Source of the DNA: Bugula neritina
Lineage: Eukaryota; Animalia; Bryozoa
Length of the DNA: 64,000 nt
NCBI GenBank assembly: GCA_964035545.1
Contig: OZ037772.1
Location: 9,851,150 to 9,915,149 of the forward strand
Direction of reading: 5' to 3'
Shown here piece after piece: positions 23,801-49,226 of the stretch. The stretch's first letter is position 1; every line of letters begins with the position of its first letter. The notes beneath the pieces were generated by a model. That model ran no database searches and was not told where the DNA came from. It saw only the letters and a program-made list of their open reading frames with translations. The position numbers and the translations under genes are program-made.

Positions 23801-24243
23801 TTTCAATAAATAATTTTATTATATATATACAAGTTTTGTTTTATTATTTGTTACAGATGGAACTCCCCAATCAAATAGAACAATTTCCTCTACCTACACC
23901 TTTCCCAATACACCGGAGAAAAGCATTAATTAGTGAAACATCAAATGGCTGCACAGGAAGTTCTGTTGCAGAAAAAACAAAAGTCTGTGGAGATTCTGGC
24001 ATAAACCAACAACCACCACCATATTCTAGACAGCTACAGCAGGAACCTTCCACGGCAATACATGGTAGATGTGTGGCAAACAATCGAGATTTGAGAGCTG
24101 ACAAGAAACAGACAAATAACTTGGAAAACTCAAATTGTTATGGAGGATGGTTAGATGGAGGAGATTCCTTTGGCAGAAAGTTAATGGATGCTTCAGTCAC
24201 TGATTGGGAAAAAGAATATTTCGATTTAGTTCGAATAGAATAA
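20836..24243 (+). CDS. Divergent Bcl-2-family protein 1 (~290 aa; 128-aa hydrophilic tail, no TM)
   Basis: Exons 20836-20915, 21755-21852, 22211-22377, 23107-23247, 23857-24243 (phases 2,1,0,0). BH4-like STQIIAAFVQE, BH1-like LLQDSVITWTKIMM, BH2 DKWIESMGGW followed by an intron. Exon 1 is the least certain. Confidence 0.8.
21096..21272. repeat. (ATATA)n pentanucleotide microsatellite
   Basis: Visible tandem ATAAT units. Confidence 0.9.
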
Positions 24244-24745
24244 TGTTTTATTCAATAAGTTATTGTAAAAATTGCAAAAAATATGTTGAACTAAATGTTT
24301 TGTAAACACAAAAAATATTTAAATAAAAGCTTTATTAACATATATATACTTTCAATGTAACTCTAAAGCAATAATTTCAGACAATATGATGGAGGATTAC
24401 TAATAGAAAAAACTGTTTAATGTAGAAATAAACTTTTATCAAACATTAAGTAAGAGACTTTAATAATTATTGCGACATACAAATTAGTGTTTATATTTGT
24501 ATATATATACTAAACTGCATTATTATTTCACCAGACTCACTAATTACTAGTTTTTCAACATAGTTGATTACCCAAAGTTAAAGTATTTTCATCCATGCAG
24601 CCAGTGATTTCTTGTTTACTTAAAATAATTTTAACAATGTATTACATTTTTGACTATAATGGCTTCAAAAATAACTAATTAGTAGTTTTTAGATTCAAAC
24701 TTATATTCAACTTGACCTCAAAGTCTCTGTTAACAAGAAGATATA

Positions 24746-47400: not shown

Positions 47401-49226
47401 GAATGTTAATAATAAAACAGTTGATAGTAAATTTATTGGAGTTTGTTTAATGTAGCATATTATACTGTAGGATGTTTTAGGTTTTGGACATATGAAATAA
47501 TTTGAATTAAAATATAATTATTAAAATATACTTATTATATGATAGGTATTGCATAATAATGTATTTATTTGCCAATTGACTTAATTCTCATAAGATTTTA
47601 ATTTTTTGTTGGTTACATTGAATGGCTTTGTAGTGTGGAATGAATAATTATCCATTACTGAATATTTATATATAAAACTGATTACATACTTTATTTTTGT
47701 TAAATACATATATTTTAGTACTGCATAATAAGCAATAAACTCACAGTTTTAAGTTTACTATTAGTGTGAATAGAGCAATCAGTTAGCAATGCATTTAAAC
47801 TCTATATTAAACATTTTGTCCTGTTTAATAGCACATTCTACCTCTGATCAGCAACCAATGATATTCCTACAACATGATAGTTAAAGTGCTATAAAGCTTT
47901 TAAGCAAATTTATTTTTATATAATTTCTATGCAAGCCACTGTTGTACCTTGTAGATTGCAATACAAGACCGCCTGCCTGCAGAGACCATGGGCCACCCTA
48001 AAATAGCATCTTCTCCTCTAGAAATTGATGAACTTGGTAGTGTTCCAACCAATGAACCATTTATAGATGCAGAAGAAGAGATTCTAGCGCAACTGGCAGC
48101 CGCCGAAACCGGCAGATTACGGCGCTACATTGATAAGGAGGTGCGGAGACTGGCAAAAAGACAAGACCGTTTTGGTGCAGAGTGCAGAAGAAAGGAACAA
48201 GAGGAGATTGCAGCACGTATGGCTGAAGCGCAAGCTCCAGCAGCTACACAGGGTGAAGAAGAGGTCGTTGAGGAAGAATCTATGGATGCTGCAGATCAAC
48301 AAGAAGAAATTCCCAGTCAGCCTATCCCTCCTACCACTCCAAGAAGCAGCACACGACAGAGCACCAACCCTCGATCATTTAATACCGGGGAAGCTGCACA
48401 AGCCCTCCTCAATCTAGGAGGGGCACCAGCACAACCAGCCAGAACTCCAAGCCAAGATGTCAGAAGAGCCACATCATCAAGATGCCCAGTCGAGGAGCCT
48501 CAACCAACTGGCCAAAGGGTAAGCGTTCAGCCGAGTCCAGATGAAAGCTCTTTTATAAAGCAACCAACATTGCCTCCTATGTCGCCACCCGGCCAGCGTA
48601 GAAAGCAGTATCAACAAGAGATTGAGAAAGAACGTAGGAAGAAACGCATGAACGAGAATCGCCAAATTTTAGACTATCTTCCTTCACAGGCTTCTGGGGT
48701 GACTGGAGACTTAGGAGAATCTCCAGAACTGCCACCACCACGAGGTAGGATCTCAACAGCCAGAGTTCCAAGTCAGGCTCCATCTACACTGCGTCCGGCT
48801 CCATCCGCACTGCGCCCGGCTCCATCCGCACTGCGCCCGGCTCCATCTACACTACGCCCGGCTCCGTCCACACTACGTCCGGCTCCATCTACACTGCATC
48901 CGGCCCCAGCTAGATCTTCTACATCTCAAGCAAGAACCACATCTCCAGCCAGACCATCCACGTCTCAAGCTCGACCATCCACGTCTCAAGCTCGACCATC
49001 CACGTCTCAAGCACAACACACCTCTCCTGCTAGACCGTCCACTTCTCAAGCACAGCGCACCTCTTCTGCTAGACCGTCCACTTCTCAAGCTAGACCATCT
49101 ACGTCTCCTGCTCGACCATCTACCTCTCATGCGCAACAAATTGTTCCTCAACCAGCCGAAGATCCAAGTGAAAGAATATGCTTTGATATTCGTTTAGATG
49201 ATGAGGATAGTGACATTGCTGATTAG
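44424..49226 (+). CDS. Divergent Bcl-2-family protein 6 (~594 aa; 423-aa tail with 7-aa repeats, no TM)
   Basis: Exons 44424-44521, 45109-45221, 45621-45781, 47040-47180, 47955-49226. BH1-like LPVEGTMTWTKIIM; BH2 ITVWITDNGGW| (compare human BCL2 HTWIQDNGGW). Confidence 0.88.
45301..45566. repeat. Compound (CA)n-(GA)n microsatellite in intron 2 of Bcl-2-like gene 6
   Basis: Directly visible; marks the left edge of the duplicated segment. Confidence 0.95.
45839..46040 (-). mobile_element. tRNA-derived SINE family A copy
   Basis: Reverse complement of the family consensus; the paralogous copy is at 51590-51798. Confidence 0.8.
46134..46342 (+). mobile_element. tRNA-derived SINE family A, full-length copy with TSD
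   Basis: A-box TGGTCTAGGGG, anticodon-like CTAGTAA, B-box GGTTCAAGCCC; flanked by ATAGTGTCTATAGCAG / ATAGTGTTTAAAGCAG. Confidence 0.85.
48776..49135 (+). repeat. Coding 21-bp minisatellites encoding (APSTLRP)n and (ARPSTSQ)n
   Basis: Seen in the translation of 47988-49226; fewer units in the duplicate at ~54290-54430. Confidence 0.9.

Follow-up and report, generated by a model that had tools for sequence, protein, structure and literature searches.

We describe a head-to-tail tandem array of nine Bcl-2-like genes, all on the + strand, in a 64,000-nucleotide (nt) stretch of DNA from a bryozoan of the genus Bugula (the whole stretch is referred to here as the window). In genes 1 to 6, the exon that follows the intron splitting the Bcl-2 homology 2 (BH2) motif encodes a long hydrophilic tail, and none of the six tails contains the hydrophobic segment of a membrane anchor (Table 1). 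The explanation that we favor overall, with moderate confidence, is that this is an array of divergent, anchorless Bcl-2-fold genes whose tails descend from a single last exon.

The comparison DNA consisted of Bugula neritina contig VXIV02003332.1 (assembly GCA_010799875.2; loci L002 and L009) and a JGI contig (L007). Window positions 19211 to 54757 were colinear with VXIV02003332.1 and L007, introns included, at 75 to 88% nucleotide identity. Judged by this colinearity, the window comes from a Bugula that is very close to, yet distinct from, the sequenced B. neritina (GCA_010799875.2). We do not consider it human, and it contains no viral or toxin gene. The gene 3 tail was 87% identical to the B. 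neritina protein KAF6018149.1 (P0002).

Both gene structure and profile searches place the heads of these genes in the Bcl-2 family. In 9 of 9 genes, the BH2 exon ends with a Trp codon (TGG) followed directly by GT, i.e., a phase-0 donor (GTAAG, GTTAG, GTAAC, GTAAT, GTGAG, or GTAAA), in agreement with the phase-0 intron that the first-pass annotation had stated for genes 1 to 6; the motif itself is GGW in seven genes, CGW in gene 4, and QGW in gene 5. The exon is 141 nt long except in genes 2 and 3 (129 nt). The bcl-2 homologues of almost all animals share a BH2-splitting intron directly 3' of the TGG (Trp) codon (PMC7527217). A second phase-0 intron lies seven codons past the BH1 Trp in every array gene, and its fixed site points to one shared ancestral gene structure. 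For the spliced genes, similarity searches were run exon by exon. A profile of the nine BH2 exons matched the BH2 regions of BAX (E = 5e-6), BAK, and Bcl-2 in the PDB, with the alignment ending at GGW. Individual BH2 exons matched model positions 55 to 100 of the Pfam Bcl-2 family (PF00452) with E values of 2e-5 to 0.02, which fall below the gathering cutoff because single exons were scored. The exon 3 profile gave weak matches (E = 0.015 to 0.4) to the BH1 region of A1, Bcl-xL, and BAX, upstream of the BH2 match as expected.

Divergence among the heads was extreme. The BH1 motif is degenerate, with the Trp of NWGR as its sole invariant residue (TWTK, NWEI, EWSS, TWNR, SWTR, etc.), and only this Trp and the GW of BH2 are invariant across the paralogous Bcl-2 exons. 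Amino acid identity to gene 1 was 19 to 34% for the BH2 exon and 9 to 29% for exon 3 (9 to 35% for the BH1 and BH2 exons overall). A tree of the 47-residue BH2 exon resolved only three pairings: genes 2 and 3 (support, 100/95), genes 6 and 7, and gene 8 with its orthologue. It thus supports the earlier claim that genes 2 and 3 are sisters but does not resolve the proposed pairing of genes 4 and 5. We consider it reasonably probable, as part of the overall explanation, that the array consists of tandem, very divergent Bcl-2-fold genes of a bryozoan.

The tail exons are real coding sequences under purifying selection. In each of genes 1 to 6, a pyrimidine-rich phase-0 YAG acceptor lies exactly at the start of the tail open reading frame (ORF), 455 to 774 nt past the donor, and the acceptor positions (23857, 27784, 31670, 37786, 42510, and 47955) and tail lengths (128, 145, 618, 190, 358, and 423 amino acids [aa]) were those of the first-pass annotation. 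Tail ORFs of 191 to 618 aa were longer than anything obtained in 100 local-composition shuffles (longest shuffled ORF, 251 aa). The lengths of tails 1 and 2 (148 and 170 aa from stop to stop) are explicable by chance alone; B. neritina conserves both ORFs. All six tails are intact as ORFs in that species, at 76 to 88% aa identity and with in-frame indels only, and their ratios of nonsynonymous to synonymous substitution rates (dN/dS) between the window and B. neritina were well below 1 (Table 1). Nucleotide identity to B. neritina was 0.85 to 0.90 in the tails and 0.86 to 0.96 in the BH2 exons, compared with 0.70 to 0.82 in most introns and spacers. The first 8 to 20 and the last 12 to 25 residues are among the best-conserved stretches of each tail. 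In addition to the conserved ends of tails 1 and 6 (Table 1), these include TDDSDEFMDLLYA in tail 2, PMSHSDDPLALHGKKLKGIRYCL.A in tail 4, and DVRPESDSLYVSAQTEN.GLESVV in tail 5.

The absence of a hydrophobic segment, also claimed earlier for tails 1 to 6, was confirmed. The maximum 19-residue Kyte-Doolittle mean was -0.03 to 0.68 in the tails, versus 1.65 in the last exon of gene 9, the array's own transmembrane (TM)-like example. The tails are hydrophilic (grand average of hydropathy, -0.47 to -1.06), and the C-terminal TM segment of tail-anchored Bcl-2 proteins was found in none of tails 1 to 7 (maximum hydropathy, ≤0.68). A TM anchor might nevertheless persist if exon 4 were spliced mainly to an unrecognized TM exon or if the tail were an alternative last exon beside such an exon. 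Hydrophobic ORFs are indeed numerous downstream of the BH2 exons in this AT-rich DNA, and gene 9 shows that a TM-like last exon exists in the same array. We compared the region from each BH2 exon to the next gene with B. neritina and found no convincing candidate for an unseen TM-coding exon: none of 20 hydrophobic ORFs combined a phase-0 acceptor, TM-like character, and openness in B. neritina. Seventeen contained stops or frameshifts in that species, one was unmappable, and two were open. Of the open frames, that at 27508 to 27612 lacks both TM-like character and an acceptor. The second, a 29-codon hydrophobic ORF at 50132 to 50218 that is open also in the gene 7 copy, lacks a phase-0 acceptor ahead of its hydrophobic stretch, and its openness means little because the unusually conserved spacer between genes 6 and 7 is 87 to 90% identical throughout. 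In a 75-nt sliding comparison with B. neritina, conserved islands appeared at the known exons, and the BH2-to-tail introns contained none.

Conserved AATAAA signals lie 79, 168, 136, 157, and 247 nt past the stops of tails 1, 2, 4, 5, and 6, respectively. Those of genes 1, 4, and 5 are inside a small conserved island just past the stop; in gene 2, the island starts approximately 30 nt downstream of the AATAAA. Given these signals and the lack of a conserved hidden TM exon, the tail exon appears, from the genomic comparison, to be the true terminal exon of genes 1 to 6, and persistence of a TM anchor seems quite unlikely. The spacer after gene 6 (49405 to 50604) has an identity of 0.87 to 0.92 between species and is repeated after gene 7 (55858 to 56830); candidate explanations are a regulatory element, a repeat, or a small exon.

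The splicing of the tails onto the Bcl-2 exons is inferred from predicted junctions. Alternatively, the tail ORFs could be separate or independently expressed genes that are not joined to the Bcl-2 exons, a reading that we regard as very unlikely. It draws on in-frame ATG codons within the first 27 codons of tails 1, 3, and 6 and on the prokaryote-style gene callers that predict the tails on contigs as stand-alone proteins. However, tails 2, 4, and 5 have no Met in their first ~85 to 105 codons (in genes 4 and 5, the first Met is at 38089, approximately codon 102 of the tail, and at 42762, approximately codon 85), yet their conservation starts at the acceptor. Where tail 6 has a Met at codon 12, B. 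neritina gene 6 encodes Leu, and the ten residues ahead of this codon are kept in all four copies. Moreover, all seven long ORFs lie downstream of a BH2 exon that has no other last exon, on the same strand, at a regular distance of 455 to 814 nt, and each with a phase-0 acceptor. The NCBI model of gene 6 (P0009) likewise connects the BH2 exon to the tail; it lacks exons 1 and 2 and is broken at an assembly frameshift. This frameshift (L009 positions 11611 to 11620), which lies within the gene 6 tail and is absent from the JGI contig L007, is the reason why gene 6 is annotated as split models of 242 and 244 aa.

Gene 7 bears on this question from both sides. It is a partial copy of gene 6 and is decaying (window 50500 to 54517; L009 13986 to 16458), with no match to exons 1 and 2 and with stops and a frameshift in exon 3 (51337 to 51504). 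Its BH2 exon is intact in the window; in B. neritina, a region corresponding to ~52150 to 53343 is deleted. Despite the decay of its Bcl-2 exons, gene 7 has kept an open tail ORF in both species, and this survival leaves room for tail ORFs of the gene 6/7 type being expressed alone. Its constraint is nevertheless relaxed compared with that of gene 6 (dN/dS, 0.62 versus 0.30). The gene 6 and gene 7 tails of the window differ by a dS of 0.16, below that of either orthologue pair (0.24 to 0.27), which suggests gene conversion between the two tails.

The relationships among the tails could be explained by divergence in place or by swapping. The first-pass annotation had proposed the latter, namely, that the tails are unrelated modules, each gained on its own through shuffling of exons at the phase-0 BH2 intron, with a constant head and interchangeable effector tails. 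Its observation that the tails lack visible similarity holds for alignment searches: between tails 1 to 6, BLASTP E values exceeded 0.3, and the hhalign probability was below 1%, which was also the outcome of the profile alignment it had suggested as a test of homology. It does not hold for position-locked comparisons. Over their first 16 residues, tails 2 and 3 scored 28 with BLOSUM62 (null, -12.7 ± 8.5; P = 6.5e-5), and over their last 16, tails 1 and 2 scored 24 (P = 1.4e-3 after 16 offsets). The top, nonsignificant hhalign matches were at the same two spots (the start of tails 2 and 3 and the end of tails 1 and 2). Furthermore, the gene 7 tail, which the range of the first-pass observation did not include, is 84% identical to the gene 6 tail, indicating that tails travel with the gene upon duplication. 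The description of the tails as unrelated was thus not borne out for these pairs.

The rates of divergence also account for the loss of similarity. Between the two Bugula species, dN was 0.03 in the BH2 exons (dN/dS, 0.10) versus 0.07 to 0.14 in the tails, so that the tails gain amino acid changes 2 to 5 times faster than the BH2 exon. Because the paralogous Bcl-2 exons are already only 9 to 35% identical, tails evolving at such rates are expected to be unalignable without any swap. The tails also change in length through in-frame 21-nt repeats (tails 3, 6, and 7), whose numbers vary between species and copies, and through a 147-nt internal duplication in tail 3 (32426 to 32572 and 32720 to 32866). 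Tail 3 also carries a 21-nt repeat at 32568 to 32637, and in tail 6, two helices are followed by PSTLRPA and ARPSTSQ heptad repeats (21-nt repeats at 48772 to 49129). Word-based searches with tails 3, 4, and 6 returned only orthologues and no donor-like protein. With no evidence of exon swapping found and with a divergence rate that suffices, a role of the phase-0 intron as a swap point is not supported.

A relative outside the array is consistent with an older origin of the long last exon. Two contigs with 41% G+C from two ENA metagenome assemblies (L013 and L014; ERZ4903326 and ERZ1740072) carry a Bcl-2-like gene of another animal with the same exons 2 to 4 (L013 positions 1320 to 4276). Approximately 600 nt past GGW|GT, this gene has a hydrophilic Ala/Pro/Ser/Gln-rich ORF of ~190 aa, whose sole weakly hydrophobic stretch is near the start, roughly at the usual TM site. 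On this evidence, the long anchorless last exon probably predates the Bugula array. A search of 1.84 billion proteins with the BH2-exon profile yielded three long repetitive proteins and otherwise almost exclusively exon-sized ORFs of genomic contigs.

Shuffling does find some support. The compositions of tails 3, 5, and 6 differ strongly, and the introns checked were all in phase 0, giving symmetric exons that can be shuffled. Tails 4, 5, and 6, in addition, resemble neither each other nor tails 1 to 3 in BLASTP, hhalign, or end-locked tests, and independent acquisition is therefore conceivable for these three. Considering all of this evidence, we favor, on balance, the interpretation that the tails are fast-diverging descendants of one ancestral last exon and regard acquisition by shuffling as unlikely. 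If the BH2 intron were, against these expectations, a true swap site, bryozoans and at least one other animal would have an unrecognized Bcl-2-fold subfamily that works off the membrane, with one ligand-binding head wired to varied disordered effector tails. In that unlikely event, the tails might be phospho-regulated, nuclear, helical/oligomerizing, or lipid anchored, and the subfamily would, by analogy, represent a modular, nonmitochondrial animal use of the Bcl-2 fold comparable to that of poxviruses.

The tails are predicted to be mostly disordered, with tail 6 not wholly so, according to AlphaFold2 models of tails 2 and 6. For tail 2 (modeled with its orthologue), the mean predicted local distance difference test (pLDDT) score was 41.7, and helices occurred only at residues 6 to 15 and 136 to 144, i.e., the two conserved ends. 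For tail 6 (four sequences), the mean pLDDT score was 49.8, with 305 of 423 residues below 50. The earlier description of the tails as disordered thus stands for most of both models but fails for two confident, long, charged helices of tail 6 (residues 34 to 93 and 212 to 240). Pfam gave no match to any of the seven tails, and a PDB sequence search gave none to tails 5 and 6. The tails vary in composition: in tail 3, [ST]P sites number 9.7 per 100 aa, whereas Glu and Lys are abundant in tail 5, and tail 6 combines long helices with heptad repeats. Given its 60 [ST]P sites, tail 3 is likely subject to proline-directed phosphorylation. Tail 4 ends (window 38320 to 38358) in a polybasic stretch followed by CLQA, which is CaaX-like with a Cys at position -4. 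This Cys is conserved in B. neritina (...YCLKA), and Q or K is an atypical residue for the a2 position. The box is a candidate lipid (prenyl) anchor; the term "soluble" might therefore fail for some tails.

Other candidate motifs found no clear support. LC3-interacting region (LIR) motifs, suggested by DEFMDL, GDWVDL (GDWVNL in B. neritina tail 5), and EYFDL, were not enriched over shuffles as a shared tail feature: tails 1 to 6 contained three xLIR matches versus 0.84 expected, and two of six tails carried one (P = 0.17). Basic clusters resembling nuclear localization signals were present only in tails 5 and 6 (P of about 0.1 versus shuffles). A BH3-like reading of a tail 6 helix (LRRYIDKEV), made by eye, was dropped because it misfits at the small residue and at the fourth hydrophobic position.

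Several of these results, including the unmatched tails 4 to 6 and the surviving gene 7 ORF, weigh against our interpretation. Transcripts were sought via the tail proteins, and all of the contigs retrieved (JGI 3300002729 and 3300003318; Logan SRR4020080, SRR4020083, and SRR4020084) were genomic, with introns kept and no cDNA among them; because every related contig was genomic, the junctions of exon 4 with the tails are predicted rather than observed. The B. neritina gene models were made by AUGUSTUS with transcriptome hints (PMC7576161), and the NCBI models are inconsistent, with that of gene 3 (KAF6018149.1) skipping exon 2 and the BH2 exon. The searches returned no complete protein for any array gene, and the annotated 294-aa protein of gene 4 was not among the sequences retrieved. 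Finally, no function is assignable to the conserved end motifs from the tests for xLIR motifs and basic clusters, neither of which was enriched over shuffles.

TABLE 1 Features of the Bcl-2-like array in the window (dN/dS values are for the window versus B. neritina)
Feature	Position	Strand	Description
Gene 1 BH2 exon	23107-23247	+	141 nt; ends GGW|GTAAG; Pfam Bcl-2 positions 55-100, E = 2e-4; 98% aa identity to B. neritina
Gene 1 terminal exon	23857-24243	+	128-aa hydrophilic tail plus stop; conserved C-terminal motif VTDWEKEYFDLV; dN/dS 0.45; conserved AATAAA at 24322
Gene 2 BH2 exon	27200-27328	+	129 nt; ends GGW|GTTAG
Gene 2 terminal exon	27784-28221	+	145-aa tail plus stop; no Met before residue 105; dN/dS 0.24
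Gene 3 BH2 exon	30942-31070	+	129 nt; ends GGW|GTAAC; Pfam Bcl-2, E = 2.6e-5
Gene 3 terminal exon	31670-33526	+	618-aa Ser/Pro-rich tail plus stop; 60 [ST]P sites; dN/dS 0.33
Gene 4 BH2 exon	37167-37307	+	141 nt; ends CGW|GTAAT; 100% aa identity to B. neritina
Gene 4 terminal exon	37786-38358	+	190-aa basic Ser/Pro/Arg-rich tail plus stop; ends KKLKGIRYCLQA; dN/dS 0.33; conserved AATAAA at 38494
Gene 5 BH2 exon	41822-41962	+	141 nt; ends QGW|GTAAG; Pfam Bcl-2, E = 3.4e-5
Gene 5 terminal exon	42510-43586	+	358-aa acidic/basic tail plus stop; contains GDWVDL and KRPRAKKPKR; dN/dS 0.35
Gene 6 BH2 exon	47040-47180	+	141 nt; ends GGW|GTGAG
Gene 6 terminal exon	47955-49226	+	423-aa tail plus stop; conserved end ICFDIRLDDEDSDIAD; dN/dS 0.30
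Gene 7 BH2 exon	52513-52653	+	Within decaying partial duplicate of gene 6
Gene 7 tail ORF	53468-54517	+	349 aa; 84% identical to gene 6 tail; dN/dS 0.62
Gene 8 BH2 exon	58156-58296	+	
Gene 9 BH2 exon	62628-62768	+	
Gene 9 last exon	63687-63923	+	Only TM-like stretch of the array (LFYAAMAGGLAIGAAVANL); in-array contrast to the tails

The comparison of last exons covered genes 1 to 7; the contig with the gene 8 orthologue (L016) stops just past the BH2 exon. Within 58297 to 61000, a candidate last exon of gene 8 (58886 to 59011) has a weakly hydrophobic stretch at its end (VCIAALKIVCRLAAVI). In gene 9, the TM-like stretch is separated from the stop by 39 further codons, an unusual arrangement for a tail anchor; the end of the window follows soon afterward. 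The animal DNA of the window is AT rich (~31% G+C) and has long GT, TA, and AG microsatellites. Those in the array introns and spacers (25461 to 25764, 29758 to 29959, 45342 to 45566, and 50716 to 51295) comprise (GT)152, (TA)98, (AG)n, and a CACACACT repeat and give rise to spurious long low-complexity ORFs. Upstream of the array, an exon-sized ORF on the - strand (5376 to 5660) matches the IRS-type PTB domain (PF02174; E = 1.2e-11) and belongs to an unrelated neighboring gene.

Under the explanation that we favor, genes 1 to 7 would represent one array lineage that lost the C-terminal tail anchor. The exon past the conserved BH2-splitting phase-0 intron would have turned into a long, mostly disordered hydrophilic extension, and the tails would have diverged in place after tandem duplication, aided by in-frame repeat expansion. 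Each resulting protein would consist of a Bcl-2-fold head, lacking a tail anchor, joined to a flexible tail. The working parts of these tails may be the conserved end motifs, acting as short linear motifs, and phosphorylatable Ser/Pro stretches may matter too. Such end motifs would set partners, location, or regulation in place of insertion into the mitochondrial outer membrane.

By analogy, the nearest known architecture is that of BCL2L13 (Bcl-rambo). Bcl-rambo keeps a C-terminal TM anchor after its long post-BH2 extension, whereas the Bugula tails have the extension without the TM segment; this comparison is one of described architectures. The shared layout is a multi-BH head followed by a long non-BH extension after BH2 (labeled the "BHNo" region in a figure legend of PMC3289992). 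Bfk (BCL2L15), BCL2L12, and Bid similarly are Bcl-2-fold or BH2-bearing proteins able to work without a tail anchor. Bfk has no TM region (PMC8814693), and Bcl2L12, which is proline rich and also lacks a TM region, acts on postmitochondrial caspases and nuclear p53 (PMC3289992). Unlike the array genes, these three are single genes without a long post-BH2 extension, and in Bcl2L12, BH2 is at the C terminus, with the PxxP motifs N-terminal of it.

With canonical multi-BH Bcl-2 genes, the array shares the BH2-splitting intron after TGG (PMC7527217), profile matches to BH1 (weak) and BH2 in the expected order, and, in gene 9, a short linker followed by a TM-like last exon. It differs from them in its degenerate BH1, where only the NWGR Trp is invariant, and in the last exon, which is a short linker plus TM region in canonical genes (PMC8998228) but 128 to 618 hydrophilic residues in genes 1 to 7. 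The expansions in Hydra, Acropora, and sponges likewise comprise many Bcl-2-like paralogues of uncertain orthology in one invertebrate genome, but these retain recognizable BH motifs and a TM region (PMC8998228). A survey of apoptosis in lophotrochozoans included no bryozoan (PMC11463336), and we found no published description of the array genes. In B. neritina, their orthologues are listed under the name "hypothetical protein" and lack any precomputed Pfam match.

The C-terminal tail anchor is considered critical for Bcl-2 protein function (PMC8998228). Here, six or more Bcl-2-like genes in one animal lineage appear to have given it up for long disordered tails while under purifying selection. 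If the spliced proteins exist as predicted, the array would provide a natural experiment on the role of a Bcl-2 head away from the mitochondrial outer membrane. It would also be a clear case of the fast divergence of disordered terminal exons after tandem duplication, with short end motifs kept.

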